The notes under the pieces were generated by a model that did no database searches, had not been told where the DNA came from, and was given only the letters and a program-made list of their open reading frames with translations. The position numbers and the translations under genes are program-made. A DNA stretch of 62,745 bases, filler included, from Trichosphaerium sp. ATCC 40318 (lineage: Eukaryota > Protista > Tubulinea): NCBI GenBank assembly GCA_038496445.1. It is 3 parts of 3 records of this genome, joined end to end, with 100 filler letters (N's around TTAATTAATTAA, not from the genome) between each part and the next. Parts side by side here need not be neighbours in the genome. Positions count along the whole stretch, not along the records: positions 1 to 29,405 come from JALMLS010000439.1; 2 more parts are not named here. One strand, 5' to 3'. Numbering within the stretch: position 1 is the stretch's first letter; the number at the start of each line of letters is the position of its first letter. Shown here one piece after another: positions 1 to 26,730 of the stretch.

Positions 1-1342
1 GGTATAAAAAGACGTGAAAAAGTTACTGCGAGGGACAGGTACTCACCTAGATGGCTAGATGAGCCATCAATAGAAACAGTAGCACTCGAATACAAACAAA
101 CAAGGAGTAACATTGCTGACATTATGTTACCAATGACAGAGGTTGTTTTGAAAGAGATTATTGGAGACGGTAACTACGGTATTGTTTATAGAGGGTACGT
201 GTCTTCTTATTTACTCAGAAATGGGTTCGCTTGGAAGTGTGCTTATGTTTGATTCTAGGGAGTGGCGAGCCATTAATGTGGCTGTTAAGATGGGCATTAA
301 TATTGCTAAAGATGCTTACACAGAGTTCCTTGATGAAGTATCAGTTATGAGCGCTATGCGACCTCATAAGCACGTGACCCAATTATTTGGAGTTATTCTA
401 GAACAGAACCATAGAGGAATAGTCATGGAGTAAGTAATATAAATGAAACTTTTTGATCGATATTAATAAGATTTGAACTTTTTGGTTTATTTACTGTATT
501 TTAGGTATTATTCTCGAGGTTCCTTGGATCGCTATTTATTTGACCTATCAACCGATATGACTCTTAAATATAGGCTTGAGCTTCTTATTGGAGTTGCTCG
601 AGGTATGTTACATATCCATAAGGAGGGTTTTGTGCACAGAGATTTGGCAGCTAGTAAGTTAAAAAAGATAAAAGGGTTTGGCTTGTCATTTACAAGTGTA
701 CAGGAAACATATTATTATCCGATACTGGTGTGCCCAAGATATCAGATTTCGGATTATCAAGAAATCTTAAACTTGGCACTAAAGGAAGGACAAAGGCTCT
801 AACAGGACCAATAAGGTACACTAAATCAATTATCGAAGTAGTAAAATTCTGGATTCTTTGTTTCTAACATTTGTGTTTTTTAAGGTGGATGGCACCTGAG
901 AGTATTGGTTCAGGTAGGATTTATTCTAATGCTTCAGATGCCTGGATGTTTAGCTGTGTTTGTTTTGAGTGCCTGGTAAGCCATTTTCTCTCTTTTTTTA
1001 TTGCTGCATGAATTACTTTATATTGTGACAGCTGTTGTTGACTGGTTATTTTCGTAGGCTAGAAAGGAACCACATGAAGGTTCTCATGATTTTTTGACTT
1101 TGGCTGAAGGAATACGAGATAAAGTGCGCGTTTGTTTTAACCTTTTTTTAAGAAATACAAGTCTCCATTTATTGATATTTGTCGCTTATACATACCAAAA
1201 GGGATCACATCCAAAGATGCCTATAGAAACGCCAGTATGGCTTATGGAACTTACACTAAAATGTTGGTCTTTTAATCCCGAAGAAAGGCTTACCTTTGAT
1301 GAAATTTGCTCCGTTTTTAAAAGAAATACTGAAAGCAAATAA
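1..1342 (+). CDS. Tyrosine kinase / TKL protein kinase, multi-exon, 5'-truncated by the window
   Basis: Spliced motifs IGDGNYG, VAVK, FLDEVSVM, HRDLAA(RN), ISDFGLS, GPIRWMAPE, SDAWMFS, CWSFNPEERLTF across GT-AG introns; stop at 1340-1342. Confidence 0.9.
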
Positions 1343-1536: not shown

Positions 1537-2639
1537 CATGACAACTCAAGAAACACGCAGAAGCTTTTCTGATAAAGAAAACTACATTAATATGCCTACA
1601 ACGCCAACAAGGAGTCCATCAAAATCGATTTTAAAAAAGAGGAAATTGAACGACTTATCCTTCTCTATTTCGAAACGTAGGCACATAATACGCCCAAATG
1701 GTGCTTCAGGTACGTCATTATCGTATTCGTAGATGTATTTACAGCCAATAGACAAAATTTCGCTTACAAAGCTTGTTGGCGAATTTGCTACACGTATAAC
1801 TGCATCTGAACTATCTAGAAGAGCGTTGGAAGCAGAACTAATAAAATCAGAGCAAGGTAAAGAATTTTGAAAAAGAAACAGAAAAAAAGTAGCCGTTAAC
1901 TAAAACCGCGGCTAGAAAAACAAGAGTTGCTACAAAAACTAAGAGAAAAGGATGAATTAGAAGCGAGATTAAATTTAAAGACACAACAATTAGACCAGGT
2001 AAAGCTTTTTTTTGAAAAAATGTTCGATCCCTTACGATTTTTGTTTCTAGTTACTCATAGAATGTGATAAATGCGTAAGTACTATGTTTTCTTTGCATAA
2101 TGAAATGACAAGTTTTGATGTTGGTGTTTTCCTATTTTTTTCTTATTTTGTTTAAATCTCATCGAACCTAGTTCAAAAGATTTGAAACAGAGCGAGAGAA
2201 TATGGTAGAAACTGCGTGTAGGAAAGTAACAGAATTAACAGAGCAAAGTGCTGCGTTAGCGTCAACTCTTTCTTCAGTAAACAAAAACCACCGAGTGCGT
2301 TCGTTGTTCAAATACAGCCTTTTAGACCGTTCTTTTTCTTCGAGTATTTCGTCTGATTCATGCTGTAGATTTATGTAACGCGAAGCCAGGATGAACTAGG
2401 ACAAGTTAAAAAAGAGTACGCTAAAAATTAGTCTACAAAAATCACGTGATTTGGATACTCATCTAACTTTTTTTTTTTGTAGATTGTTTAATGCTTACGG
2501 TGTTATGATTAATCTCAGCGATATGGTTTCTGGTCACGAGATTAATAATTGTGATATGAATGAACTATATAATAAGGCCTTACAAGAAGGCGTTAGTTAC
2601 AGGGATTTTGCTTTGTGGTTATCGCAGCAATTCCATTAA
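1537..2639 (+). CDS. Hypothetical coiled-coil protein, multi-exon
   Basis: ATG 1537 (MTTQETRRSFSDKEN..KKRKL), heptad-rich exons separated by short GT-AG introns, last exon ..WLSQQFH*. Confidence 0.6.
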
Positions 2640-3067
2640 AAAACAAAGCCCAAGCAAAAAAGAAACAAATGAGAAAAACTCGTTTTGTATAATAGACTTG
2701 TAACATAAATAACTCCATTGTGTGATCTCTTGTTGGTTTTTTGGAGTTTCTATACCATCTCTTCAATAGTTAGGAAAATAACAATCAGTACAGGTTTGTA
2801 AACAAACGCCAGACTAGAGTGTCAACTTAATCGCTGTAGCAGTTCTTAGAAAAACGTCAAAACAGTTCAAAGTTAAGTTGTTATCCGCTTGGAGGCATTC
2901 TCGGAATAGCGAATCGCTCACTCTGGAATACATTGTCTTGCAAAAGAGCTCAGTTTGTTTCGAGCTTCAGTTGAAATTTACAACAGCTCTATCAACGGTT
3001 CAAAACGGCATTTTAAAACTTAACGAATGCCTTAAGCCGTCATTACATCCTTCAAACGCTACATATA

Positions 3068-3406
3068 ATGAACATCTGTGGTGTATCAGTAGAACAGGCT
3101 CTAGTGTACCTTCGTGAGACACATACAGATGCTTTAGCTCAGATTAAGTCCAAACATCAAGAAGCATTTGTAACTCATCTCGAACGTGTTTTGCATGAAT
3201 CAAATACAACCCTTTTGCAGCAACTAGACATGGCAATACTGAAATATACAAGTAGCAGCCAATTAAAACGTAATCAGGCTACTAAATATTCAAAACCTCA
3301 TTCGCTTAGCAATAAACAATTAGTAGGGTACGCAGTTTTTGTAGTCTTTTTTTTTCAACTGCAAATGGTTTTAGGCTTGTTTTTTTGTTTTCCACCCAGA
3401 TTGTAA
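3068..3406 (+). CDS. Small hypothetical protein
   Basis: 112-aa ATG ORF with helical composition; the 3' part may be intron/UTR. Confidence 0.35.
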   Translation: MNICGVSVEQALVYLRETHTDALAQIKSKHQEAFVTHLERVLHESNTTLLQQLDMAILKYTSSSQLKRNQATKYSKPHSLSNKQLVGYAVFVVFFFQLQMVLGLFFCFPPRL

Positions 3407-3626
3407 CGTTTTTTTTCTTAGTTTTGACTTTTTGACTACAAACAACAAGCTGGGTTTGCACTACATTTCGCGAAAGTAGGCAGCCTTGTTCTATTTCTTC
3501 GAAATCCGTTTTTTTGGAGGGCTTTTGTACAACATTTTGCAAGAAAGTAGTGCATTTTTTAGTCAATCGTGGCTCTAGTTACTTTTGCGAAAAGTAGTGC
3601 AAACCCTTTGCTTTTGAAAAAAATTT

Positions 3627-5123
3627 GTGAGTGACGACACGTGCGCCTTACAAATATTTCCAACTGAAGGAAAAAAACGTCTAGAGAAAAATAAAAAGTG
3701 CAAGAGTCTTGTTTGCCATTATGATATCATAGCCCTGCTTTCACTCATTTTTATTAGTACACTTACCCACGTGACATCACACAAAGAACCCTTTATTGTA
3801 ACAGACTTTCCACCAGAAGTTATTTCAAATATCTTAAGTTATACAAGAGGTAAAGATAGATATTCTGCTGCCCAATCATGCCATTTTATTGCTGATATTA
3901 TTCATGATATTGTTGGTTATGAGCAAGTAACCCTTTCTAAAGTTAAAGATATTCTACTCGCTAGAAGTTACAAGGGTATCATGAACAATAGTATAATTGT
4001 GATGAATTGTAATATTACAAATTTGTACTCATTGTTAGCTGGGTGTCACCACATTAAAAGATCATCAAATCGTCAAATGACCAACTCTGATCTGCAAGCA
4101 ATATCAGGTGTTCATACAATAGATTTAAGCTATTGTCAACAAATAAGTGCTCGTGGTCTCAAACAACTAAGAGGTGTACACAAGATTAATTTAAGTGGGA
4201 TCCGTAGGTATTCTTCAGAGGGGTGTGACGGCCTAACAGATAAGGCACTTAAAATAATGACAGGTATCCATACCATCAACCTTTCAGACACTTCAATAAC
4301 AGATAAAGGGTTCAAATATATGAAAGGTGTTTATTGTATTGATGTTAGTGATACAGTTATAACAGACAAAGGATTAACAGCTTTACAAGGTGTACATAAG
4401 ATAATTCTTAGAAACTGCTCCTACATTACAAACAAAGGTATTGAGGCTCTCAAAGGCGTCCACAGTATCTCTCTAAAGAACACAAAAATAACAGATGAAG
4501 GAATCAAATCCCTCAGAGGCGTTCATTGTACTGATCTTTCGTGTACTGCTATCACAGATAAAGGTCTCAAAGTATTACAAGGAACCCATACTATTTGTCT
4601 AGATGGTCTTGACACTATCAGTGATGAAGGTATCAAAGCATTAGCAGGGGTCCATGCCATTTCTGTGAGTGGATGCACTAACATCACTGATGAAGGTATC
4701 AGAGCGCTTAAAGGTGTTCATTGTATTGATCTGTCGTGTACTTCTGTTACTGATAAAAGTCTTAAAGCATTGGCAGGGGTCCATACCATTTCTGTGAGTG
4801 GATGTGCTAACATCACTGATGAAGGTATCAAAGCACTCAAAGGCGTCAATTTTATTGATCTGTCGTATACTTCTGTTACTGATGAAGGTATCAAAGCATT
4901 AGCAGGGGTCCATGCCATTTCTGTGAGTGAATGTGCCAAGATCACTGATGAAGGCATCAAAGCACTCAAAGGTGTACATTCCCTTGATATCTACTGTACT
5001 ACAATAATGGACGAGACCATCGATGCCCTAAGGCCTGAACTTTGTTATGTTTATGGTGATTTCATTTCAGAAGTTATGGGAGTGTGTAATGGGCTTTATG
5101 TAAATATTTGCGTTAAGTACTAA
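3627..5123 (+). CDS. F-box / leucine-rich-repeat protein, essentially intronless; true start uncertain
   Basis: F-box-like TDFPPEVISNILSY..AAQSCHF, then about 13 LRRs of consensus GVHxIxLSxTxITDEGIKALx; near-identical tandem duplications at ~4620-4970. Confidence 0.85.
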   Translation: MSDDTCALQIFPTEGKKRLEKNKKCKSLVCHYDIIALLSLIFISTLTHVTSHKEPFIVTDFPPEVISNILSYTRGKDRYSAAQSCHFIADIIHDIVGYEQVTLSKVKDILLARSYKGIMNNSIIVMNCNITNLYSLLAGCHHIKRSSNRQMTNSDLQAISGVHTIDLSYCQQISARGLKQLRGVHKINLSGIRRYSSEGCDGLTDKALKIMTGIHTINLSDTSITDKGFKYMKGVYCIDVSDTVITDKGLTALQGVHKIILRNCSYITNKGIEALKGVHSISLKNTKITDEGIKSLRGVHCTDLSCTAITDKGLKVLQGTHTICLDGLDTISDEGIKALAGVHAISVSGCTNITDEGIRALKGVHCIDLSCTSVTDKSLKALAGVHTISVSGCANITDEGIKALKGVNFIDLSYTSVTDEGIKALAGVHAISVSECAKITDEGIKALKGVHSLDIYCTTIMDETIDALRPELCYVYGDFISEVMGVCNGLYVNICVKY

Positions 5124-6213: not shown

Positions 6214-6929
6214 ATGAGGGCATCGGCTGAAACCTTGTCAGATTTGATAGTATATTAGTAAATACTCCTCAATTTTGATAGCGCTTGGAAATGAGACCCA
6301 TAAAGTTTGTTTCAACAAAATCTTCTTTCGTTTTTGTGAATTTACAAGTGGCATGCATAAAAAATGAGTGAATTTATTGCATTGATACATTAGGAACCTA
6401 ACAGGTTCTATTTCCTCGAATATCAAGGTAACTTTTTTCTAGTATTGTTGATTGTGGAATATGTTTCTAACCCATACCACAAGTGTTACAGGGAGCCCTG
6501 GAATGGTTAGGTACACATTTAAAATATATAGATACTAACCTCCAAACCACTATATATTTAGAAAGTTTCCATGGCATATTATGTGCCTAGAACAATTGTT
6601 AAAAACTTGATTAAAAAAAACCCAATCAGGGCTGAAACTCAACAAGGCATTTTTGGACAATGCGTAGGCATTTTCATCAAATAATGCCTTATTTTTTACA
6701 AAAATGCCTAGTTTTTGCTTCATTCAAAAAGGCAAATACAGGGCAATGCCTTATTTTTTGCTCCAAAAATGCCTTATATTTGATGAAAAAAGCTTGCATC
6801 TGGTACACAAGATTGCAATGGTTTTGCCTGCATATTTTTAGGAATTATGCCCTTCAAATTAGGGCATAACTCATGCATCAATGCCTTATTTTGAAGGCAA
6901 AAAGTAAGCATTCAGGGCTAAAAATTTTC

Positions 6930-7425
6930 GTGGTAAAAATGTATAATTTACTGTCAAATTAAGATAAAGTTTACTGTCAAAAAGCAAGTTTTACTTCCTC
7001 AACTACAGTAAAAAACTGTCATTTTGAAGGTAAATTCAGGGTTTTTACTATGTTTTTTACTGGTAAAAAAGCTGTATTCTATGTAAAAACAAGACAAATT
7101 TACTGTCAAAACTTGGTAAAATCCAAACCATGTTACCGTCAAAAACTAAAGCTCATTACAGGTAAAAACCAAGGTATGTTACCATCAAAAACTACCCCAT
7201 ATTACCAGTAAAAACCAAGCCATATTACCATCAAAAACTACCCCACGTTACCAGTAAAAACCAAGGTATGTTACCATCAAAAACTACCCCATATTACCAG
7301 TAAAAACCAACCCATATTACCGTCAAAAACCAACCCATATTACTGTCAAAAATTACTCTACATTACCTGCAAATCACGACTTTATTTACTGGTAAAATAC
7401 AAGTTATTTTACTGTCAAAAAGAAC
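6930..7425. repeat. Left subterminal repeat array of element C
   Basis: ~22-23-bp units alternating TTACCAGTAAAAA and TTACCATCAAAAA (7150-7345) plus scattered TTACTGTCAAA; similar motifs at 20045-20175. Confidence 0.85.
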
Positions 7426-7441
7426 TACCAACAACCTGACG

Positions 7442-9687
7442 CTATAAAAACAAATAACCACACTCATCTTCTTTTTCCTTCAACTCAGATATTGAAAAGC
7501 GTTGTAATTTATCTAAAACTGCAATAATTTATTAGATGTGATTAACAATAATGCAACGTACAATACACATGATGTCTAATCAACTTCGCTTTGTTAGCCA
7601 AGTAAAATTGTTTGAAGAAGAACTTGATTTGGGCTGAACTAACACGACATTTAGAATTTTTTAAAATCCTTTTTGAAATCATGTCACTTCGTTTCTAAAT
7701 TCCGTTAAACACTGAAAGTTGCTAAAAAAGACTCACCTCAGGCTTTTGAACTGCAACTGCAGCATAGATGTATCTGGCAACCATTTCTGCATTTTGTTGA
7801 CGGCTCATCTGTAATTTGTTATCAATAACTTTAATCGCATAATCAACTTCTACAACAGTTTTATATGCTTCAAGCACAGGCATAAAACCAAGTATTTTGT
7901 GAGCATTTACACCTGGACCTGGTACAGTTACCAGTTAGCACTTAAAGCAACAAAGTACAAAAATAATTCCAAAAACCCAGATAACGCACAACATACAACT
8001 ACACACTCATGCTGCGGCACAGCAACCATACAAAGCCAACCTCTAAAGATCATTAATCCTCTATCATATAGATTAAACGCGTACATGTTGGTAGAGTAAC
8101 AATCATGTAAACTTTTTGGATTGACTATTTCACACCCAATTTCTTGGAACAAAAAAGGTACCAAACCAAACACCAAGGTTTTTGTTATATCAACCTAGGA
8201 GAGCGTTCAAAAAAAAGTGATAATTAAATGGTTTACGTCTAACTTATCTTCATCTTTGAGTGGCTTGTGAAATCCGATGATCTTATGTTCATACGTAACT
8301 CCTAAAAAGATCAACTAGCGGCATAATACAATGGAAAAATGTGCTACCTCTGTAAAAAACCAAAAAAAGTTAGCAACGCATGTAAAATGTATTTGCACGT
8401 ACTTTGGTCTTGCCACGTAAAGGTACGTTTGCATTTGAGCAGTATTGGGAGTTCCATCTTTAGAAAAGAGCCACACACAATCTTCAAATGTGTATGCTAT
8501 TGTTTTTACAAATAGCTCCGTAGAAAAAGAGAATTTGTCGCCCTTGGATTCTTGTTCTACAGTTGACGCTAATTCATCTATTTAAAGCGATTGAATTAGT
8601 GCACAATCAACTTAAAGCAGATACAAACTTGAGTTGGTTTCTTTGGTGTTTGAATTTTTGCCAACAGAATTTTTAGTAGGAGTTTTTGGTGGACTAGAAG
8701 CTGCGTCATATTCATTGATAAGTGCATCCAATGTACAGGTGATATTTTGCACATCAAGTAAATTGACATTTTCATCATATTCGTCGCTGTTGTTATAACA
8801 GTAAGCGAGCTGTTTGGTAATAAAATGGACGTACATGTATTTAAGAGCATCTTTTACTTCAAACCACTTGGTCGCTGAATTATAATAATTTACAAATTGT
8901 ACTTTTTTATCAACAGTAAGCACCTTCCACAGTCTATTAACCTACAATAACAGATTCAATTAGAGCTGTGTAAACAACATTTTTTATAACGCACATCAAC
9001 AGTGAACAAAGTCTCCGCTTTGTGAGTGATTTTAAATACAAACTGTTTACCAAAGAATGCTCCGCCACGCAAGGCCGCTTTCATTACACCAACTACAAGG
9101 TTATTAAGTGTTTATAAAGCGAGAAAAGAAGAAAAATTAATTTTGTGTTTTTTACCTGTACTTTCTGTTGAAATATCTGGTCGCTTCTCAAGCAAGATTC
9201 TCAAGTATGCAAACATGTATCCTCTCATCTTTTTTAGTTGGTTTTCATGCTTTTTTTTGACTAATGAAAAATCTATAACGACGTCCTGGGTTGTTTCTTT
9301 TTTTCGCCATTCAGCTTGTAACTCCTTCAAAACGGTGTCTTTGTCTGAAGAACCAGCCTCCATCAAGGCAATAATAGCTTTGGTTATTTGTTTTTTCTGT
9401 GTTGTAGTAAGTAAAAAATGAATGCTTCTAGCAATGCAAATAATTAAAGCTGTCGTAACGTACAGGCATAGGAGCAGGCGTAGAGAACTTTTTTTCTTTT
9501 AATTCTTTTAATTCTCCAGCCATTAATTTCAACATTTGACTCATGTTTCTACAAGTTAAATGAACAAAAAGAACCAGTAATAAAGCCAGAATTTAAAATT
9601 TAAATTGTATTGCTCGTACTTCATCATAGGGACTATTTTATCAGGAGTCAGCTGTTTTTTGGAAGGAGAAGGTTCTGATGACATCAT
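7442..9687 (-). CDS. Element C accessory gene 1 (multi-exon, unknown; TnpA-like position)
   Basis: ATG at 9687 (MMSSEPSPSKKQLTP), exons matching ORFs 9112-9366, 8612-8923, 7928-8176, apparent end ..KEKEDECGYLFL* at 7442; same strand as and directly downstream of the transposase. Confidence 0.6.
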
Positions 9688-9726
9688 TGAGCTTTGTAAA
9701 ACTCAAGTTGACTTTTATTCAATTTT

Positions 9727-12700
9727 TTAATTCGGAACTGCAAAGTGATGATAATTGATCAGATAAATGTTGTCATCTGGCGTTTTGTACAATTGTGCAA
9801 GTTTGTACACTCTTTTAAGCTCCACACACACAATTTCATCTGAAGGTTCAACTCTACAACAAACAATAAGCCAAAAAAACCCTCTTTGCCTCAATTGTGA
9901 TCACATACATCAAGAATTCTGTTTCTTCATCATAGCGGTATTCAGTATCAGAGACACGATAACACCTGTGGACATTAGTTAGCTTTTTGTGTAAGTAAAA
10001 GACATGTAAACGCACTCTCCTAGTATGAATACTGTGTTAGGTTGGTACAAGCTTTTGTATATTCGTTTTGTAGCAACATAAATGCAATTTCTTTTTGTTT
10101 CCTTTTGGTACGGTCGCCATGTTTTAAAAAGAGTCCTTTGTTCCATGGTGAGTTTGATTGTATCATCTGCAGACGTAACAGAATTGTACATAGCAAATGC
10201 TCCATTTTTTATTTCATCTGCTAGGTGAGGAAAGGAGTGTTCAATTGCTATTTTTTCTTCGAGACTTAACCATTTTTTTTTGCATTTGTTATTGCCTGTA
10301 ACAAGTGTCATGAGTTACACTAAGTTTGTCAAATGAATTTTGTAACTTACGTAAAGTCCATGTCATATGAGGCCTGTAGTAAAACGCTGGAGTTGTGACA
10401 GTAGGAGCTGGGTTCATTTTCTTTTTAACAATCACGCTTTGACACACATCATCAAATTTGCCAGCATAAGAAATCATAAGCCACGGAATCTCCTTTGAAG
10501 CAATGTCTCTGTAATAAAAATAAGTTTTTGTGCAGCCATTGTGTTATCAATGAACAATTAATAAACTGTACTGTATTTTATTGTGGTTTTTTGAGGACTT
10601 CTTCCAACTTTTAATGGTTGCGTGTTTTGATTCACATGCGTAAGTGCTGTCACCTGTCAAATGAACGTAAATCTGCTCTTAACGCACCTAAAATGCTTGA
10701 ATACACCAAATTTCTTTATCATGTACTCATAATGGTAAGGTATGTGAAAATTGATAGTGTTTGTGCTAAGATCTACAAATTTTTTGTAAGACGGAAAAAT
10801 TGTAATGAAACATTATTCACCTGGAAAGCTATCTTTTATTGCTTCCAACAAGCTTTTATATATGGCAGTAATCCTATTTAAGTGACCTTCAACAAGCAGA
10901 TAATCTCTTTGTGTCATGACTATGTACGACAACAAATTTTTCCTGTAAAAACTATTAGCAACAAAAAAAAAAAAAACACAATAAATACCACATGGACATC
11001 ATCTTGTTAGATAACACATTTCTAAACACCAACAATGCCATCTTTAAAAAAGTTCTCATATCTGTGCCATCCCAACTGTCTTTGACTAAACACCCTGTTT
11101 TGTTCCACACAGCTTTCATTCTGATGCGATGTGTTAACAAATTAAAGTAAAAAGAAAATAATATTTCGTACTTTCCTAAACCAGTGTTTTGTTGTCTGAT
11201 GTACTTTATCCGTTTGGTAACAGTTCTTTTTATCTCTGTGACAACGTTTTCTTCTTCTAGGTGAGCTATAGTTTCAATCAAAACAGTCTGTGATATCCCC
11301 AATATTATGTTGTGAAATGGACAGTACGGAGAGTCCAAAAAAAAATCAAACTTGAACGGCAGCATTAAAGCGAATGGAGTCTGATATAAAAAGCCAAGTC
11401 AGCTTTAAAAATAAACTCTGAGAAGACAAAATTGTACGAGAACTTGCCTTTTCATTGACTCCATAACAGTTCTTTACATGATTTTCATAATTTCTTGTGT
11501 CAAGGTCGTTCAATATCATTTTAGTTTTTCTGTGCTTTGCTTCTAATTCTTCAGCGTCCGTAATTGCTGTGAATGATGCTTTGGCCACTCTACAAATTCT
11601 GCAAGGATAAAAACAGGTGGTATTCTTCATAGCTATGTAAATGTAAAAAATGTGAATGATGTAACATTTAACGCACATATCAACCTGTTGGATCCTGGAC
11701 TGTCACCAAGTATCATTGTCAAACGTAAGAATACTGTAAAATACTATTGTAACAGTTTGTTAGTGCTCAAGAAAATTGGATTAAGAACTTTAAGCTTACC
11801 TTTCCTTCACTTTTGATGTAGCATTTCATTCCGTTAAAAACTTTCAAAAAATCTTGCACCACGTGTTTTAATAAATCTTCTTCATGGTGGCACTTAGGCA
11901 GCACAGACAACAACATTTTGCCTGTAGCATTGGCACTATTTGGTAAATTCCATACCACCATGTAAAGCGGTCCAAAAGTATCTTTTTTATCATAAGTGAA
12001 GTCGTCTTTACTTATGTATGCTGATACATTGTTAGGCAGAAATTGATGGCAATTTGACACTTTGCGTACCAGGAAGTAATATTGTATTGTGCTTATCAGC
12101 TTTATATCTATCCAACACATTTCCAAATATGGTTTTAATGTGAGATCCTGTTTCTGGCCCTCTGTAAACTTTATGGTCTGTAACTTCACCTTCAATGTTC
12201 GTAGTCACAGTTGGTAAATTGTCAATTATGCACTCTTTTATGCTGTTTCTGCTTGGCAAGTAATAAAGTACTCGTTTGATATGCTCTGATGGAGAATAGA
12301 ATGGAACTTTGACAGTTGAAACAGTTTCATTTGCTTTGTTTTTTTTTGGAACAATAATATGTTTCGTAGGCTTAAACTTCATAAGAAACTACAACGTATT
12401 TTTAGTCTAAAGCATGAAATTGAAATTAATACCTTGCTTTTGATGTTATTAAATAAAGTTTCAACACAACAAGAGATGATATCTACCAGAAGTTAACAAA
12501 AAGCCATAAAAAAAAAAAAGAAAAAAAGAAAACGAACCCTCATTTTTAACCCCGTAAAGCAGTAACGAGGTGTTAAATAAGGTCAAGATTTTTTGACAAA
12601 GGACTTTAGAAAGCTTGTATTCCATTTTTAAGGCCAATAAAAGATATCCAAACTTCTCTTCAGAAGTAGCATCAGCCAAAGATGCCATCGGTTCAAAATC

Positions 12701-13202
12701 AGGAGGCATATTATTATTTATTTCTGTTGATTTATGATATTAGTATAAACAATAAAGCAATCTTGTAACTTACCGTAGGGTTCTTGCAATTCAAATTGGT
12801 TGTCAAACATTTCTTCATCTTGATTGTTTTCAATCTCAAAGTTTTCATAGCTATTACTATCTTCACTGCTTACGCTACTATAATCCGCGTACTCTGAGCC
12901 ATAACCATCGCTTTCAGGGTCATCAGAATTCTCTTCATTAAAATTGTCGCAAGAATTATGTGAGCAGATTTCATACAGATTTTCTTCTACATTCATGTCG
13001 TCAGGCTCATTTGCGAGATTTGCCATCCTTTCTAAAACAAAAATTAGCATTAGCGTTGATATTCTATAAAAACCACAAAATACGTACCAGTACAAGCCAT
13101 AGCAGCTAAATGTTTGGTTGAATTGATGTGTTCATATTGAAAGTACCTTGTATTATACCGTCTATTGCAAATAATGCAATAAACTGTATCATCTTCAGCC
13201 AT
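9727..13202 (-). CDS. CMC-superfamily (EnSpm/Plavaka-like) DDE transposase, multi-exon, N-terminal C2H2 zinc finger
   Basis: Spliced motifs MAEDDTVYCIICNR..HINSTKH; YISKDDF..GPLYMVVWNLP; MILGDSPG (~11700); FYPCRICRV; PYCPFHNIILGI; WDGTDMRTFL; TINFHIPYHYEYMIKKFG|STYACESKHATIK (~10610-10760); stop at 9727. Confidence 0.88.
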
Positions 13203-13346
13203 ATTGTTAGCAAACACTGTAAAGTATAGTTTTATAAGTGTCAAATTAAGTCTCATTACAACGAGGAAAAATTGGTTGAAACGCGTTTAAACTGAGCTAT
13301 TTATTGTATCATCTAAAAAAAAAAAGTGAGCATGTACATAAATAGA

Positions 13347-16300
13347 TTATCTTTCGCACTTAAATCTTGACAAGTACTTTTCTTTTCTGACAGTGTAGGC
13401 TTTTTCTCGTTCTATAATGTGATCATCGCTGTCTGTTGTTGGCTTATTAGTTAAAGGTGGAATTAGCAAATGGTTTTTACAACAAGGACAGCATGGCAAT
13501 GTAGATCGTATTTTGTTCTGCCTTTTTTGTTGTCTAAATATAAAATACGATTGATTGCCACAGTATCCCCAGCCATGAATGTATGCTTTTACAATCAAAG
13601 CTTTCTCATAACCTCCAATAAAACTATTAAGTTTGTGGCTCATGTAATTATTAGCGTACCAACTGTTGATTTACCAATGAGAGAAAAGGATAATATCAAA
13701 TATGTAGCCCCTTCCCAAGTATCCATCTTTTGTTGTGTCCTCAAAGACAATTCAGCCATCTCAATCACATTATTTAAAGTATCCTTGTTATCGCAACCTT
13801 GTATTATAAAAAGATTGTCTCCAAAATATCTACAAAACCATCAATTGTTGTATTGGATATTGTTTTTTTTCGTACTCTTTGTTGACAGCGACACTTTTTG
13901 TTATAACTTTTAATCCAGGCTTGGTCGTTGCATGTGTACTGCCAAACATGCAGTTGTAGATAGTAGGAATAAGCTGTAATTGTTTGAAGCTGAGTGGAGA
14001 GTAAAAAAGTGCATTACTAAAGCAAAAAAATGTACATACCCGTTTTTGTTATATAACAGCACATCACCGTCATCCAAATAAAGGTGTTCATCAGTTTGCA
14101 TATTGTACATAGACCTTCCAACTATGCAATGAAGATTTGCTTTTACTTGGGGCATGTGCAAAGGTACTCTAAGTCTGTGGTCCCAGCGTATCTGTTTAAA
14201 AGGGCTTCTTTTAATGCCGTCCATCAATTTGTGCAATTTTAGCATTTTCTTTGCGACAGTTTCAGATAATGGCTAACAACGTAAGTGAAATTGCAGTTAT
14301 ACTAAACGTTGTATGAAATATAGTACCTCATCATTTATTTGTATGTGCCTCAATACTACAGTAAAGTAGTTGGTAGTGGCTGTAGAGTAAGCAGCTTTTT
14401 CACATGTGACTTTAACGGAGTGTGGAATACTCCTTGGACTCTTTACTATCTTACCATTGTCATCTTTCTCTACGCCATGCAGTCCCCACACAAATTGTTT
14501 TTCAATGAGTTTGACTGCATCATCAATGATAATTTCTTTTGTGTGACGATCGCCGTTTTTAAATACCACAGCTGCACATGTAAACCCGCTATTTGTATCC
14601 ATTGCCCCACCAGTTCCATCACAATGTCTGCCCAGCTCAGCACTCTTTTCAGTCCACCCCTTTTTGATGCAAATCAGTCAAAAATGGCACAGTAAATAAA
14701 TAAATGAAATACTATCGTACTTTTATTTCAACGTGTAGCTTTGAACAGTCACGCTTATAATCCAAACTATGCTTCAAACCACATTTGTAATGAAAAACAC
14801 ACAAGGGTTCCAATAATCTCTTATCTTCGGCATCCAAAAGATATGTGGGATCACAAAAATTATTGCCTTTGGCTTTGCCAGAAACAGGAGCTACCCATCC
14901 AAAGGGATCACAGTCTTCCGCATCTTTGAAAGAAACTGAAGAATAAGGACTCACATAATATGGTGTATTTATATTCGTGTCAGTGTATGCTCTAAGCTAA
15001 ACTGAACGATTAGTGACACAAGAAAAACTTTGTAAAAAAACCAAAAAAAAAAAAAAATGGAAAATAGTTTTTAGCACCCTGTATCGTAGTTTCTTTTTGT
15101 GTCGCAACACAAACTCTTTTAAACCTGCAAAAATAGAGCCATCATCCAAGGTGTCAGGGCCATTGATATTGGCATTGTACAGAAAAACACCACCAGAGTT
15201 TAATTCCGATATTTGAGATAATTTTGTAACCTTGACAGAGTTACTTGTATAAACACCAAACCTGTTGAGAGGGACTGAAACATCTTTTTCATTTTGAACA
15301 CCACTCTCCAATAATTCTTTAACCTTTTTTTGCTCCAGCAAAGTCTTTTCTAACTTCTGGTAGTCTATGATAATGGTTTCTGCACTCTTTCCCACTCTGA
15401 AACATTCGATCGCAGCATTTAAACTTCTTACACTTGGTGGCCTTCTCACCTTTATTGTTCGATGATCTAACTGTTGTTGAGCCACCCTGTGAATGACCAC
15501 AGCACATTTATAAACATCACAAGCTTGTAAATCTAATGTATTGGTGGCCTACAAATAAGTTTAACTAAAGTAAAAATAATCGGTTTGATACCCTTTCCAA
15601 TGTTTCATAGAAAGATTCTGCAGTTGGAATTGGACCATTTGCAGCAGAAGAAGCTCGTAATATTGTCTTCAATTTCTTGTGTCTACAACGACATTAATAA
15701 TTCGCAAATAAACACAATATGTGAATGAACAATACCTGTTATCTGCTTGTACCGTTATATGTACTTGTTTCATCCAAGGCTCCATATCTTTTTTACTTTC
15801 ACTTTTTTTGTAGAGCTTTTGAATTACTACGTCGGTTAAGAGGTTGTATAACCTCTTTTCAGTGCTAATTATTTGTGACATATATTCTTTCTCTTGAAAT
15901 GGCTTGTTTCTAAGTGGCATCAGAGGAAATTACGAGAAATAATGTACATATTATGACTTGTTCTTGTCTTTTGTTTTTTGGTATTTCTAATATTCTAAAA
16001 CAAATGTCATTAATAGCATTAAAGTAATAACACTCACCATTACATATGCCAGTTGTACATGTGCGCTAGATGCTTTTCTCTTTTTAGACAACACTTCACC
16101 AATGTCTTCTTCATCAACATCTGATATTGAATCGTCGCTAGGAACATCAAACGATCCATTTGCATGTGTATCTACAATTCCCTGACACAAAGTGAGATTA
16201 AAAATGTAAGTGTTCTGTACAGTTGTTGGAAGATCAGTGTCACCTGCTTCACTTTCATCAAAGCTCACATTTGCAGCGTCAATTTGAATATCATCAATAA

Positions 16301-16519
16301 TGTTTTCTCCAATGTCCTCTTGACTGCCTCCAACAACGGTACCACTGTTGTCTGCACCTTCAACAACGGTACCACTGTTGTTTGTTCGTCTGATTGCTCT
16401 AAGCGCCCTTGCTCTTGCATTATTTAAGCGCCTATAAGAAATCACAATTAACGAGACTTAAAACAATTTAAAACCAAGCCACACATGCACCTTTGTTGGC
16501 ACTTTCCTACACTTGACAT
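13347..16519 (-). CDS. Element C cargo gene 2 with putative 2OG-Fe(II) dioxygenase (AlkB/TET-like) domain
   Basis: ATG 16519, acidic N-terminus; spliced LHVEIK|GWTEKSAELGRHCDG..FTCAAVVF..RSIPHSVKV..YFTVVLRHI gives HxD (14618-14626), H (14420-14422), R (14348-14350); Cys-rich C-terminal exons. Could be more than one gene. Confidence 0.6.
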
Positions 16520-17169
16520 ACTTAAATGGACGTTTAAGGATCTACAACTAAGGTAAATTGAAATAAAACGTACAAGCACACAAAACGGGTAAAAACTTCA
16601 AACGCTTTTCACCCCACCTACATTTTTGTAGCACACACGATTAAAGAGCGTTTGAGCGACTTTGCTTACTTTTTAAGCGCCAAAAATTTTATTGAGCGTA
16701 TGGCGTTATACGCGCTAATAAACGCCATTGAGCGAGCTTTTCAAATTTTTGTGATTTTTCAAAAAAAAAAAAAATTTCTTGCTGAATAATTTTAGTGTAC
16801 GCCAAAGATTTGTAGCACCCATTTAAAAGTACGTTTTTATGATCTATTTTACATACCAAAGGAAACGACGATGGTTTTTAGAAGCTTTTTTCAAGGCCAC
16901 AATTTTTTATCCCCTGCTTGTCCTCCTCTAATGTCATTTTAGTGCGTAAGACAACAAATACGTGTTAAATAGCACTTTTACACAAAAACCTCAAAAAAGA
17001 CACTCACAGATGCTCGCATTTGCTTAAAAACGCTCGCATTCACTCACAGATGTAGAAAAATTATTTTTCAAGGTAATTTACTGGTATTTACCTGTATAGT
17101 CCAAGAATCTTCCGCTGAATCCTTGCTTAGAAGATAAAACGTTATGTGAAAGCTTTTTGACTTCAAGCA

Positions 17170-17460
17170 TACGCTTTCGCCAAAAACACTGCCATCAAAG
17201 ACGCTTTCATCAAGGACGCTGCGCTGCCACCAAAGACACTTTCATCAAGGTGCTGCCACCAAGACGCTTTCATCAAGGCACTGCCAAAAACACTTTCATC
17301 AAGGACATTGCCACCAAAGACGCTGCCACCAAAGACGGTTTCATCAAGGCGCTTCCACCAAAGACGCTTCTACCAAAGACGCTTTCACCAAAGACGCTTT
17401 CATCAAGGACGTTTTCATCAAGGACGTTTTCACCAAAAACGCTTCCACCTAAGATGCTGA
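17170..17460. repeat. ~14-15-bp minisatellite inside element C
   Basis: About 20 degenerate copies of CAAAGACGCTTTCAY / CAAGGACGCTGCCAC. Confidence 0.9.
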
Positions 17461-17730
17461 TAGTACCTTGAGAGAGCTTCTTGCTTTTCCAGTGACTTGG
17501 TGGTTTGTATTTGAGGTCAAACCACCAAAACAACACTTTTGACATTGCATGACCACCAAAAAGATTGGCATCACTACAGGTACGTCGCTTTTCGGCTGTG
17601 TTAGCGCAGTATATACTGCAATAATTAAAAATAACGTTCATTAGCATTTTCACCAGTAAAAATACTTGAAGGGCGCTAGGATAACGTACGTATTATATTA
17701 ACGCGGAAAATAACACTTTAAGACGTTTTT

Positions 17731-18000
17731 GTATTACATTTTCTAAAACTGTTCATTTTTTTTTAAAAACGCTCCAATACGCCCACGCGTATATATTTAG
17801 CCACTTTACGTGTCTCGTTAATTACATTATTTAAAACTGTTAATTTTTTTTTAAAAACACTCAAATACACCCACGCGTATATATTTGGCCACTTTTGCGT
17901 GTTTCTTGTATTACATTCTCTAAAACTGTTAATTTTTTTTTAAAAACACTTAAAAACGCTCAAATACGCCCACGCGTATATATTTCGCCACTTTTAAGTG
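17731..18000 (+). repeat. Three ~88-99-bp tandem repeats upstream of cargo gene 3
   Basis: Core CCCACGCGTATATATTT; ACGCGT at 17785, 17873, 17972. Confidence 0.9.
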
Positions 18001-18075
18001 TTTTTTTCTAACAATTACATTTGCAGCTAAAACTGTCATTTTTTTTCTTCAATTGTTCTAATTTTTTATTAGAAC

Positions 18076-19698
18076 ATGGCCGCGCTAAATCATAGTAAGA
18101 AAATTGCTGCAACATTAATTGCAATGGATCCATGTACGCGTTAAAGAATATTAATAATAAGTTGACATTATCAAAGCTATGTGGATTATATATGTGGAAA
18201 AACATGTACAAGCATTGAGAAGAGAGTTTGGAGATACATTACATAAAGTGACTGTTGTGGGGCAATTTACAACTGAAAATTCAAACAGACTCAACAAACC
18301 GGAACGCGTGGAGAAGTACAATTACACGTACGTTAATAAAACATTTTTCTTTTTATTTTATTGACTTCTTTAGCTTTATACCCATTCAACGATTACAAAA
18401 ACATAACTATTTGAAGCGTTTATTAGACTTTCATGATGCTCACAATAGCACATGCACTGTCGCTGGTAGAGAGACAAATTATCCAGCGCAATTTTGCACA
18501 TCAAATTATCGCTTTACTATGGACAACAAAGCGAGAATTGTTGATTGTGTAGTGATGGATGCTCCTTGGTTGATGTTTAGATTTGTACGTACATTACTTT
18601 TGGTTAGTTATCTTTGTTTACTTTAATCTTAGCCGACCGTCAGCAAAATGAGGGTAGTCGTACACAAAGCTTATATCGAGCAAAGTTGGAACCTTGTTGA
18701 TGTTTTATTGCAGTCGTCTCTTTGTCCTCCTCCATCTAGTAAGTGCTATTATCAATTGTAAAACAGCTCATAATAATTTCATAGGTCCGTGGTGTTTTCT
18801 AGGCGACATGGTCAGAGTCCATTTTTCTTTGGTAGATCAAATCATAGGCGCAAAGTACGTTGTAGAATAATTACATGACTTTGTATTAACTTTATAATTA
18901 GTGATTCAAGGCAATTGACCGTTGGTCAGTTCATAAACGATGATAAGATCAAAAAACCAATGGACGCCATTACAAATTATCAACGAACTCTTTTGACTAT
19001 ACCACCAGAGATGTTTGACGCTATTCGAAGCTTCGGTGGCCTTGAGTTTGATCACACTCTTTCAATGGTGTGTAAGGCCTTTGTGTCTACATTGTTTATT
19101 AGACACAATGGACAATGGCTTAAACATGGAGTCTGGGTTAAACATTCAAACGATGGTAAAAGTTCTATCTTCGCTACTTACAATTGTGGAAGATGTCTCA
19201 AAGTGGTATTTGAAGAAGCTATTAACTCATTCATGTACAAGTGCGTAACTACTATGTACCTTGTTTAAAAATAATAGTTTAATCTAGAGATGTTTTTCTG
19301 TTTAGTTCTGAAGGACATTTGAAACGAGGAACCAGAGTAACCACTGAGGGCGATAAACAACGAATTGTAGAGGTTGCATTTGCCGTACGACAAGATTCAT
19401 ACGAGGTTGAAAATTTCTTCACTTTTAAGAATACGCAGTACATTTCAACGACAACTTACTCATTGTCAAAACAATTGCTGCATTGTTGCATTGAGGCTAT
19501 TAAAAATGGCCAACGGTTTTTGGCTATGAAAATCAATTATCAACCTGAAGATGAAGTAACATGTGTTTGTTATGACAAGGACACACAAAAACCTTACATA
19601 GAAATATCCGATGGATTACTCATTAACCATTTCACTGGCACAGAAGAAGGTACGAAGTTTATTTGGAATTTATTATTATCTCAGTTTTAATACGATGA
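18076..19698 (+). CDS. Element C cargo gene 3 (multi-exon; internal F-box-like motif followed by MORN/YwqK-like segment)
   Basis: ATG 18076, GT-AG introns; LLTIPPEMFDAIRSF..TLSMVCKAF then WLKHGVWVKHSNDG..ATYNCG. Confidence 0.5.
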
Positions 19699-20000
19699 AT
19701 GTAGAGCTAGATGCAGAATATAGTGGTGCCCAATTTGTTGAAGAGACTTCGTCGTTTTCTCTAACATTTCCAATGTGGCCTTTTATTTACCATTATACTG
19801 AAGAAAGGCAACACTACAATGGCTATTCATGGTTGCATCCGAATATACTCACTCCTGTGATTTATTCGAACTGCATGACAGCATTCTTGACATTTGAAGG
19901 TTTGTTTACTTTTCCTAACTTTAGCAAATGGAACGAAGCCATGGACTCATTTTTGTTGGTATCATTGGATCATGAACACCATCTACGCTTGATTATGTAA
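19695..20000 (+). CDS. Element C terminal small ORF (separate gene or last exon)
   Basis: ATG at 19695 overlaps the predicted TGA of the previous gene; ~101 aa; AATAAA right after the stop. Confidence 0.35.
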   Translation: MNVELDAEYSGAQFVEETSSFSLTFPMWPFIYHYTEERQHYNGYSWLHPNILTPVIYSNCMTAFLTFEGLFTFPNFSKWNEAMDSFLLVSLDHEHHLRLIM

Positions 20001-20948
20001 ACCAATAAAGTAGTTAGTTTTTTATTCAAGGTTTATGTTACATACGGTAAATAACAGTAATTACTGTATAATGTCAATTACCGCAAATTTACCATTGTGA
20101 TGGATTTTTTTTATTCAGTAATTACGGTCAAATCCCTTTTTTACAGTAAATACCATTTTTTGACGGTAATTACTTTGAATATTTTTACCCCTGTTATCAT
20201 AGTCTACAGTGCCTAATAAACCAGGGCATTTTCAGGTAATAACACAACTATTTATTTTATAATACAGTACACATACAATACACAAAACTCCTAAGTCCAC
20301 ATTTGAAAAAACCTTAAAGAAAATATGAGATGGTGTAGAAAAAAAAAAAAAAAAAAACTTACCTTGTAGTGTTAGAATTCCGCGGTCCTGGAAATATCGC
20401 GGAGTTCACTTCTACTACTGTTGTAGGTGAAATAGAGTGCTGTGGTTCGTTTGACGGTGGTTTCGTCTAATTTCATGAATTACTAAGAGCGCTAGGTGCC
20501 TATCTATATAAAACGTCAGTAGGTGATGTGAAAAAAAAAGTGTAAAAGTTGTTTGACTGTTACTTACCTTAAACCACTTCCTTAATGTGATCAATCCTAT
20601 GATATAGTATAGGCAATGCCTTATATATGAATTAAAATACAAGGCATATATTGCTTAAAAAAATAAGGCATAATAAAGGCATAAAGTACTTGCAATACAG
20701 GGCATTACTTGATTTTATGCAATGCCAAAAAATGCAATACAAGGCATTACCTGATTTTATGCAATGCCAAAAGATGGCCAAAAATGCCTGGTATTAATGC
20801 CTTTTTGATGAAGGCATTGCCTTTTTGTAAAAATGCCTTATTTTATTGGGCATTGCCAAATGCAAATGCCTTGATTTTGCCATCTAATGCCAAATGTTAG
20901 AAATATGCATCATTTTTTAAGGCAATGCCTAACTGAGTTTCAGCCCTG

Positions 20949-22208
20949 ATGTGTACAATTAATTTTCCATTTGTGTGCATATGGTTGTCTACGTGTTCCT
21001 CATCTAGCCATCCCATACGCATTGCGTATTTGAAGGAAATCTTGGCAGAATATTGTTGCTTGAGATACCACCTCAGAGTTATTTCTAAAACCTTACAAAT
21101 ACATCAATAAAACAAATCATCTTTTTTTCCTTTTTTTATCCCGAATGGTTGGATGGAATCAGAACTTAATTATCGTACTACGAATCAAATACATGATGTA
21201 GAGGGAGGGTTTTGAGTGTTCCAGTATAACAATGAAATACGTACTTCTTTAAAAGAAATCTCCTTTTTTTTCTCAATCTCTGTCATTTTTTCTTGGCCAT
21301 AGTTAACACATGTTGCATCAACAGTACTGTCATAGCTAGTGTATATCTGTCGAGTTGGAAGGGTTTTCCTCAAGATTTTCATTCCCTCGGTGCTCGGTTT
21401 GTAGCCAAGTAATATTGTCTCAAACTCTTCTCTAAACTCTGTTACGTAATAAGGCTCTAAACCCACCACAATCGCAGCATCTCCAAAAACACGCTCTTTG
21501 ACGCTTAGCACAAGTGTTAGCAAAACAAAAACCATAACCATTATAGTGGTACCGTTGGGAGTAAACCTCACGTGTGTCCATATCCCATATCTGAATAAGA
21601 GATTGCTTACCATCGACTTCAATCACAGCATTGTAGATGGACTAATAAGAAAAATGGTAAAGAGGTTACTCGCAAGTATCACACAATTCTTCTTTCTTAC
21701 CCACATTTTTTTTGGTCCTTCTTCTTTTTCTTCAAACACGTGATCAAACACGTGTTTTATATTCATTCTATCTTTTGCTGTATCAAACAAGACTATTTTG
21801 GGAACATCACATGTGTTTACTTTCAAGCTGGCTACAAGCTTTTGGAGCTGTAAGTATGCAAGGACACGCACGTTTTGTTGTTTTTTTCAGTACCATTTTT
21901 AGCACTTTCGGTGGTGAGTCTTGTGGAAGAGCTGAAGCGGCTTGGGGCAAGCAGTACTTCCGCAAGCAATATGTAGATCCGAAAATACTCTTAAACGCTG
22001 TATTAATCATTTCTAAGGCGTTTTAGACAAAAAAAGCTGTACAAATACCAAATACCGCTTTTAAGGACTTCTTTTGGCGTCATGAATTGTGCCATGTCGT
22101 ATAAAACATCATCTGGGAGTTTATCGATGTACGATCGCTTAAACCGCGCAGTAATATTTCCTAACCATTTTCAGGGTGTTTGTGATACTTATTTTGTCCC
22201 TAACCCAT
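20949..22208 (-). pseudogene. F-box + degenerate Ras/Rab-like GTPase gene, interrupted by element B; 3' exons probably at 5127-5182 and 6214-6626
   Basis: Spliced MG|NITARFKRSYIDKLPDDVLYDMAQFMTPKEVL (F-box); IEVDGKQSLIQIWDM (G3 region); frameshifts; the coding frame runs open into the B terminus at 20948. Confidence 0.55.
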
Positions 22209-22263
22209 TCTTGATCCTTATTGTAAGGATGACAACTTACTGTTTCGCTGAATTGCTTTTCTA

Positions 22264-22420
22264 TTGTCCGTTTCAGTCAAGTTAGTCAACTAGTTATTTC
22301 GTCATTTATTTCTCGTAAAAAGTGCTCCATCCAGTGTATACCACAACACAAATAAAGTGCTTCCAGAGCGAAAAATATCTGGCGAAATAACTAGTTGACT
22401 AACTTGACTGAAACGAACAA
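22264..22420. mobile_element. 157-bp MITE with ~41-bp TIRs and TA flanks (Tc1/mariner-like)
   Basis: TTGTCCGTTTCAGTCAAGTTAGTCAACTAGTTATTTCG is inverted at 22380-22420 with 2 mismatches; TA on both sides. Confidence 0.8.
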
Positions 22421-22494
22421 TACAACTTTTGTTTACTTTGCTAGTTTATTGATTCAGACAGAGTTGATTTGAATAGCCCAGAAACTATTGTAGA

Positions 22495-26130: not shown

Positions 26131-26730
26131 TTACTTGTTATCTAACAACATTGCCAACCAATCAATACCTTCATACAATCCCTTACCATTTGCTGCACAA
26201 CTACCTTCAATGTGCCATTTTCTATCACTCAAAGATGTTTCCAAGCCCAGCTTTTCAGTCAGTTCAGAAGGTGTAATTGCATTTGGTAAATCTTGTTTAT
26301 TCGCCAGAATTAGAATGTATGATTCTTTTAATGCATCCACAGTAAGTACTCCAGCTAGTTCTTGTTGTGCTTCACAAAGACGATCTCTGTCGTTGCTGTC
26401 AATAACAAAAATAACACCGCTTGCTCCTTTATCTAACTCATTCTGCCATAGACGTCTTAGATCGTATCCTTTGCCTCCTAGATCAAAGGCGCTAAGCGTT
26501 ACATATCTGTTTGTTGCTATTTCTATGTTAAAACCTAGCGCTGGTGTTGTAGTTGTCATTTGACCAATGCGTAGCTTGTGAAGAAGCGTTGTCTTGCCTT
26601 ACTCGAATTACACTGTCAATATACGCTAAATACGCATAGTAATACCTGCATTATCCAATCCTACCATTATTACGCGATGTTTCTGGGGATAGCCAAATAT
26701 TTCTTGAAGCATACTGAATGACACTCCCAT
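26131..26730 (-). CDS. Arf-family small GTPase (one intron), atypical switch residues
   Basis: MGVSFS..MVGLDNAG|KTTLL, PALGFNIE, FDLGGK, FVIDSND, ANKQD, GSCAANGKGL. Confidence 0.92.

Follow-up and report, generated by a model that had tools for sequence, protein, structure and literature searches.

The CMCT clade of transposons comprises EnSpm/CACTA, Mirage, Chapaev, Transib/RAG1, Plavaka, ESTA, and Lanisha, whose transposases share the residues D, D, C(2)C, H, H(3–4)H, and E (Kojima 2025, PMC12730594). Across the wider clade, 5'-CA..TG-3' termini are shared and target site duplications (TSDs) measure 2–5 bp (PMC12730594); 2-bp TSDs have also been described for some CACTA elements (PMC6004678). 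Plavaka elements generate TSDs of 2 or 2–3 bp and end in TGT..ACA (PlavakaA) or CATCA..TGATG (PlavakaB), and fungal Plavaka/EnSpm elements bear TET/JBP and third genes (PMC12730594). The giant Plavaka elements of red algae (Bostrychia), 17–19 kb in length, combine a transposase with three accessory genes and arrays of tandem repeats (bioRxiv 10.1101/2025.02.11.637652). We analyzed a 62,745-nt stretch of DNA (the window) from Trichosphaerium sp. ATCC 40318 (GenBank assembly GCA_038496445.1), of which positions 1–29405 come from record JALMLS010000439.1, and found there a 13,281-bp element at 6913–20193. We read this inner element, with a probability of about 80%, as an intact-looking, very divergent Plavaka-like transposon with accessory genes, nested in a related non-coding element.

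The boundaries of the inner element were read directly from the sequence. Its terminal inverted repeats (TIRs), 17 bp long, lie at 6913–6929 (plus strand, CAGGGCTAAAAATTTTC) and 20177–20193 (minus strand, reverse complement CAGGGGTAAAAATATTC) and are identical at 15 of 17 bases in inverted orientation, in agreement with an initial annotation of this DNA, which had given the same limits and two mismatches. Directly outside them stand the two copies of a TT TSD, at 6911–6912 and 20194–20195. An inverted match of 15/17 is not rare taken alone, as chance pairs numbering on the order of 100 were estimated for 29 kb at 35% GC; the ends are fixed by a subterminal motif together with the terminal sequence CAGGGSTRAAA. 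This sequence occurs exactly four times in the DNA searched, and all four occurrences are termini, on the plus strand at the left ends and on the minus strand at the right ends of the inner element and of the outer element that encloses it. The subterminal motif, the 11-bp TTACYRKYAAA, forms a left array at 6948–7419 (plus strand) with 17 matches, 15 of them on the plus strand, and the array includes 23-bp tandem units at 7116–7391. The right subterminal region (20040–20176, minus strand) contains the inverted copies TTACCGTCAAA and TTACTGTAAAA as well as degenerate copies; one inverted match to the motif was found at 20159–20169, and a small change to the pattern adds a second at 20139. No match was found elsewhere in the piece searched, and dinucleotide shuffles gave 0.76 matches per whole searched sequence, with a maximum of three. 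The subterminal repeats had been noticed in the initial annotation, and we presume the arrays to be transposase binding sites. When the TSD is read as 3 bp, it fails for both elements (ATT/TTA and AAT/ATG), whereas 2 bp fits both. Based on its intact open reading frames (ORFs) and near-perfect ends, the inner element looks autonomous and recently active.

The enclosing element spans 6627–20948 and is non-coding, with a length of 1,039 bp without its insert. Its 15-bp TIRs match perfectly in inverted orientation (15/15; left, 6627–6641, CAGGGCTGAAACTCA; right, 20934–20948), and an AT TSD lies directly outside both CAGGG ends (6625–6626 and 20949–20950). The left arm (6627–6912, plus strand) is non-coding, resembles a miniature inverted-repeat transposable element (MITE), and contains short AATGCCTTAT/GGCATT repeats; its final TT (6911–6912) is one copy of the inner TSD. 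The right arm (20194–20948, minus strand) begins with the other copy (20194–20195) and includes a 42-bp repeat present twice at 20691–20776. The AATGCCTTAT clusters at 6642–6889 and 20615–20841 together gave 13 matches, compared with 3.3 expected. Both elements share the terminal heptamer CAGGGCT, but the difference in internal repeats assigns the outer one to another family. This genome thus houses a second family within the same transposon group. The likeness of the outer and inner elements in their CAG..CTG ends and 2-bp TSDs supports, independently and from within the window, the view that these features are typical of a group of elements in this genome.

The transposase gene lies on the minus strand at 13202–9727. 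We modeled 16 exons (13202–9881) that join into 849 stop-free codons, separated by 15 introns of 41–67 nt (14 GT-AG and one GC-AG), and the complete protein is estimated at roughly 880 amino acids. An N-terminal C2H2 finger at residues 9–31 (Pfam zf-C2H2_jaz, E = 2e-5) was the only Pfam match in the element among the large exons of all five genes. The motifs follow in order: SKDDFTYD (residue 313), ILGDSPG (394), CRIC (416), PYCPFHNIILG (485), NFHIPYH (629), and CESKH (654). They supply the residues D315/316, D397, C416-x2-C419, H490, H631-x3-H635, and E655, so that the ordered D, D, C(2)C, H, H(3–4)H, E pattern of the CMCT clade is complete, with all eight residues. The initial annotation had described a spliced transposase and had named GDxP, CxxC, HxxxLG, NxHxxxH, and ESxH as marks of CMC elements, and all of these motifs stand in the stop-free model (GDSP, CRIC, HNIILG, NFHIPYH, and ESKH). 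Its assignment of the element to the cut-and-paste DNA transposons of the CACTA/Mirage/Chapaev group, with CAG..CTG ends, likewise agrees with the group signature in the transposase and with the 2-bp TSDs.

Relatives of this protein were few. Profile searches used single exons or stretches of the protein. A HMMER search of 1.84 billion representative proteins with a 147-residue stretch (10958–11398, the HN..LG exon, including an in-frame 51-nt intron) returned three matches only, all JGI metagenome fragments, with E values from 3e-5 to 2e-4. Their contigs, L001–L003 (2.4–7.1 kb), encode the same transposase architecture, and the DDF, ILGD, HN..LG, N.H...H, and E(S/H)K motifs are kept in all three; CAGGG ends were absent from these contigs. 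L002 has an N-terminal C2H2 finger followed by WDDFE, ILGD, PYCPLHN..LG, NFHVGEH, and ESKH, and is 33% identical to the element's transposase over 223 aligned positions (E = 1e-24). The related fragments P0003 and P0001 (L001 4917–5309 and L003 732–1118) turn non-homologous directly after the conserved 'MW', at the very point where the element's transposase has an intron (position 10989–10991 of the window). That both fragments break off after the same 'MW' where the element has an intron suggests that the intron position is conserved between the element and P0001/P0003. No further relative was found by word-indexed protein searches with the fragment P0002 and with alignment A1, or in the metagenome contigs (scanned twice) and viral contigs, and a PDB profile search with A1 gave noise only. 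On L001, the 7.1-kb contig, divergently arranged Lys/Glu-rich, coiled-coil-like ORFs lie upstream of the related transposase (1634–3408, minus strand); they have no similarity to the element's accessory genes, and L001 is possibly another multi-gene element.

To place the transposase, we used protein-language-model features and one shape search, whose results are leads and not formal statistical tests. The language-model neighbors of P0002 were Plavaka clusters (0.95, 178 shared features), followed by DUF4218 and Transposase_21; those of the element's own stretch were Plavaka (0.95, 169 shared features), RAG1_ZnH2, Transposase_21, and DUF4218. An Atlas query with the exon that carries the first D gave no meaningful neighbors. 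An AlphaFold2 model of P0002, built from four sequences, had a predicted local distance difference test score of 49.8 and was used for a single shape search, treated as a lead. In that search, a Basidiomycota cluster came first and two all-Plavaka clusters occupied rows 2 and 3 (template modeling score 0.43 with about 160 residues aligned, for a low-confidence model). The three leads agree. On this footing we assign the element to the CMCT clade with good confidence, whereas our confidence in the label Plavaka-like is moderate, its transposase representing a very divergent lineage whose nearest recognizable kin are Plavaka transposases.

The inner element combines CAG..CTG ends with a TT duplication and the outer one with AT, both within the CA..TG and 2–5 bp range of the CMCT clade. 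The inner element resembles Plavaka in its 2-bp TSD (2 or 2–3 bp in Plavaka), in a DDE transposase with C(2)C and H(3–4)H, and in its nearest neighbors by language-model features and by shape; with the giant elements of Bostrychia it shares a large size, several accessory genes, and internal tandem repeats. It differs from Plavaka in that its ends are CAGGG..CCCTG and in that its accessory genes show no TET/JBP, methylase, SET, or other recognizable domains; PF18759 had no match on its exons in the single-exon searches. It is neither PlavakaA nor PlavakaB, because its ends are not TGT..ACA or CATCA..TGATG. Similarities to EnSpm/CACTA include short TIRs opening with CA, short subterminal repeats in arrays of unequal size at the two ends, more than one product from the same strand, and the 2-bp TSDs of some CACTA elements. 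However, the canonical CACTA TSD is 3 bp, Transposase_21 and DUF4218 were undetected on the exons, no TnpA-like protein was recognizable, and the ends are not CACTA/CAC (CAC..GTG), so the element is not EnSpm in the strict sense. With Mirage, Chapaev, ESTA, and Lanisha, compared by description, it has in common the clade-wide signature residues, CA..TG ends, and a TSD within 2–5 bp; ESTA makes TA duplications, and the element is not ESTA, because its TSD is not TA.

Stop-free segments of at least 100 codons numbered 23 in the inner element, compared with 2.3 ± 1.4 (maximum seven) in dinucleotide shuffles, and five ORF chains, the transposase and four others, span 8.4 of its 13.3 kb. Gene 4 runs on the minus strand from 9687 to about 7442, with about 11 exons and about 564 codons, of which the first six exons (9687–8403) are secure. 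Gene 2b (15920–13347, minus strand) has nine exons and encodes 704 residues, and gene 2a (16519–15925, minus strand) has three exons and encodes about 164 residues, acidic with basic ends. Gene 3, on the plus strand (18076–20000), has eight exons and encodes 524 residues. The minus-strand genes are separated by gaps of 40–145 nt, and AATAAA follows genes 2b and 3 and the transposase gene, just beyond the stop codon in gene 3. The predicted introns of the five genes (n = 42) measure 41–81 nt, have 29% GC, and converge on the donor consensus GT[A/G]CG[T/A]; this consensus emerged although it was not imposed during model building, which favors real introns. During modeling, a 28-nt intron in gene 3 was dropped for an in-frame alternative of 46 nt.

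Gene 2a ends in a stop codon that shares bases with the gene 2b start codon (TGATG, within 15920–15927), and the pair may be either two genes or one gene frameshifted in this copy. One continuous gene 2 was rejected because the small exon at 15994–15957 has no GT donor in the needed phase, and the region was modeled as 2a and 2b. Near the junction, a frameshift of 1 nt that broke a single ancestral gene in two could be concealed in an A-run at about 15975–15985.

Between gene 2a (minus) and gene 3 (plus) lies a divergent intergenic core at 16520–18075. It contains a 15-bp tandem array of 19 copies (17171–17458) and an 88-bp repeat of 2.6 copies (17725–17954), each 88-bp unit including CGCGTATATATTT; three TATA-like 88-bp units stand just upstream of gene 3. 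The arrangement of further intron-containing genes divergently around a repeat-rich core, which the initial annotation had proposed, is what these four chains and two repeat arrays display. The four genes had no homologue in Pfam, PDB, the host flanks, L001–L003, or among one another, and phmmer searches with four accessory exons gave noise only. The largest exon of gene 2b, the only accessory piece searched against a database of 5.8 billion proteins, found nothing there, and no TET/JBP, methylase, SET, or other recognizable domain was detected among the large exons with Pfam.

By analogy with the established behavior of CACTA-type elements and their relatives, the parts described above suggest how the element might operate. 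The N-terminal C2H2 finger would bind the subterminal 11-bp motifs, which are numerous at the left end and sparse at the right, and the DDE core, with its D, D, C(2)C, H, H(3)H, and E residues, would cut at the CAG/CTG ends. Joining of these ends to a target cut with a 2-bp stagger would produce the TT duplication. The 1.5-kb core could act as a bidirectional promoter region for gene 2a on the minus strand and gene 3 on the plus strand. Three of the predicted further genes stand in tandem with that of the transposase along the minus strand, and one, on the plus strand, diverges from the repeat-rich core. The present arrangement would have arisen when the inner element inserted into the 1,039-bp non-coding element with its CAGGGCT ends and AT duplication.

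The nesting itself can be read otherwise, as a single element of 14.3 kb whose limits are the outer TIRs (6627 and 20948), with the inner CAGGG ends as internal repeats or as alternative ends of the same transposase. The outer TIR is indeed perfect across 15 bp and has its own AT duplication, and CAGGGCT opens both end pairs. The inner ends, however, have a separate 15/17 TIR and are flanked by a TT duplication of their own, the TTACYRKYAAA arrays adjoin the inner and not the outer ends, and the outer arms bear a different short repeat, AATGCCTTAT. Nesting accounts for all these features without coincidence, and we regard a single element as very improbable. Slightly less credible still is a transposase from another superfamily, such as KDZ/Zisupton, MULE, or hAT, with CMC-like motifs that are convergent or over-read. 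Such an origin would fit the fact that the Transposase_21, Plavaka, and DUF4218 families of Pfam were undetected on the exons. Yet four sequences conserve D, D, C(2)C, H, H(3)H, and E in that order, and the named neighbors from the language-model and shape searches were all Plavaka, RAG1, Transposase_21, or DUF4218. MULE elements generate TSDs of about 9 bp. A 2-bp TSD with CA..TG ends is unlike both these and hAT elements (8 bp). It is also unlike Zisupton (8 bp) and Kyakuja (7 bp), and the TSDs found here are 2 bp, compared with the 7–8 bp of the KDZ group (Kyakuja, Dileera, and Zisupton; PMC12730594).

A further alternative concerns the four genes beside the transposase. The initial annotation had regarded the element as a vehicle for cargo genes, a view that is unproven, since no homologue of the four genes turned up in the searches above and they could equally be accessory genes. 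CACTA-type elements are well known to capture genes. Capture would be consistent with the absence of similarity among genes 2a, 2b, 3, and 4 or between them and the transposase, and with an intron size and base composition like those of the host. Captured host genes, however, usually show recognizable cellular relatives, and none appeared in comparisons with 16 kb of flanking host DNA, with Pfam, or with PDB; the longest exon of gene 2b likewise had no match among the 5.8 billion database proteins. Moreover, the genes are complete and tightly packed, with gaps of 40–145 nt, from end to end, as in an integrated genome organization, and the published giant Plavaka elements carry dedicated accessory genes. 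The GTRCGT donors of genes 2a, 2b, 3, and 4 match those of the transposase, unlike the mostly GTAAGT donors of one neighboring host kinase gene, a small sample. Because the genes occupy the whole length of the element, showed no cellular relatives in these searches, and share the splice-site flavor of the transposase, we consider that they are probably the element's own dedicated accessory genes, and that their recent capture as host cargo is unlikely. In the host kinase gene (380–1340), the five introns have mostly GTAAGT/GTAAGC donors, and the 42 introns of the element mostly GTACGT/GTGCGT/GTACGA; if this difference, drawn from a small host sample, is real, the element genes have a splice-site flavor of their own.

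Several points weigh against an intact, Plavaka-like, nested element with accessory genes. No Pfam transposase family matched any exon, or P0001–P0003, even at E = 10, and the clade membership rests on motifs, language-model features, and a shape search with a low-confidence model. Homologues of the accessory genes were not found on L001–L003, which are short contigs of 2.4–7.1 kb. The inner element is known from one copy, and its gene models are predictions from the sequence. Several joins are possible for the C-terminal exon(s) of the transposase down to about 9727, so its C-terminus depends on the model, as does the tail of gene 4, which is the longest splice-consistent path. If 2a and 2b were one frameshifted gene, this copy would not be fully intact. 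A flanking repeat of 2 bp is weak evidence when taken singly, and the empty site that was said to prove the TT duplication did not emerge: TT stands on both sides of the element, but a blastn search of the joined flanks against positions 1–29405 returned the flanks alone, and the site meant in the initial annotation may belong to a different, unrelated piece.

Giant multi-gene Plavaka elements, CA..TG ends, and 2-bp TSDs have each been published, so the concept is not new. Contrary to the earlier suggestion that CAG termini fall outside the known range, CA..TG ends are already clade-wide in CMCT (PMC12730594). That the element may be undescribed is plausible for the transposase lineage, with its three metagenomic relatives only, and does not hold for the multi-gene concept, which has been published. 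What may be new is the lineage, with a transposase missed by Pfam, CAGGG ends, and four orphan genes, set apart from the named lineages by their descriptions. More speculatively, and in our view doubtfully, the element could be the founding example of an uncatalogued CMCT lineage, a sister of Plavaka with CAGGG ends and 2-bp TSDs, in which the four orphan genes form a conserved, co-mobilized accessory module. Such a module might serve, for instance, in anti-silencing or in modification of the transposon's own DNA by way of its internal tandem arrays, paralleling the red-algal PAG cassette with unrelated proteins.

If the lineage is truly uncatalogued, it would enlarge by one branch the transposase clade from which RAG1 arose, and this compact, apparently intact element with defined ends and motifs would be suited to a transposition assay. 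If other copies conserve the orphan genes, they would constitute a second, independent Plavaka-like case of a multi-gene accessory cassette, and such conservation would bear on the means by which large DNA transposons escape silencing by their hosts. Nesting within a related non-coding element shows that this genome has seen repeated activity of the group. How cut-and-paste transposition is understood in general stays the same.

The transposon pair lies in gene-rich DNA, as host genes flank the insertion. To its left are a multi-exon Tyr/Ser-Thr-type protein kinase gene (161–1342, plus strand) and an intronless gene for a 498-residue F-box/LRR_6 protein (3627–5123, plus strand); to its right is an exon of an Arf-family GTPase (26131–26559, minus strand; Pfam E = 7e-38). 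Further along, a 9-bp repeat resembling CCACCCATG (27645–27827, about 12 copies) falls within a minus-strand ORF of 194 codons (27402–27986), which had no Pfam match, and would encode a Met/Gly/His-rich repeat. A 167-bp near-perfect hairpin was also found at 22259–22425, with 57-nt arms that are 89% complementary and a 53-nt loop; folded as single-stranded DNA, it reaches −46 kcal/mol (z = −13.7 relative to shuffles), and it probably represents a further small repeat of foldback or MITE-like type that has no relation to the CAGGG elements.

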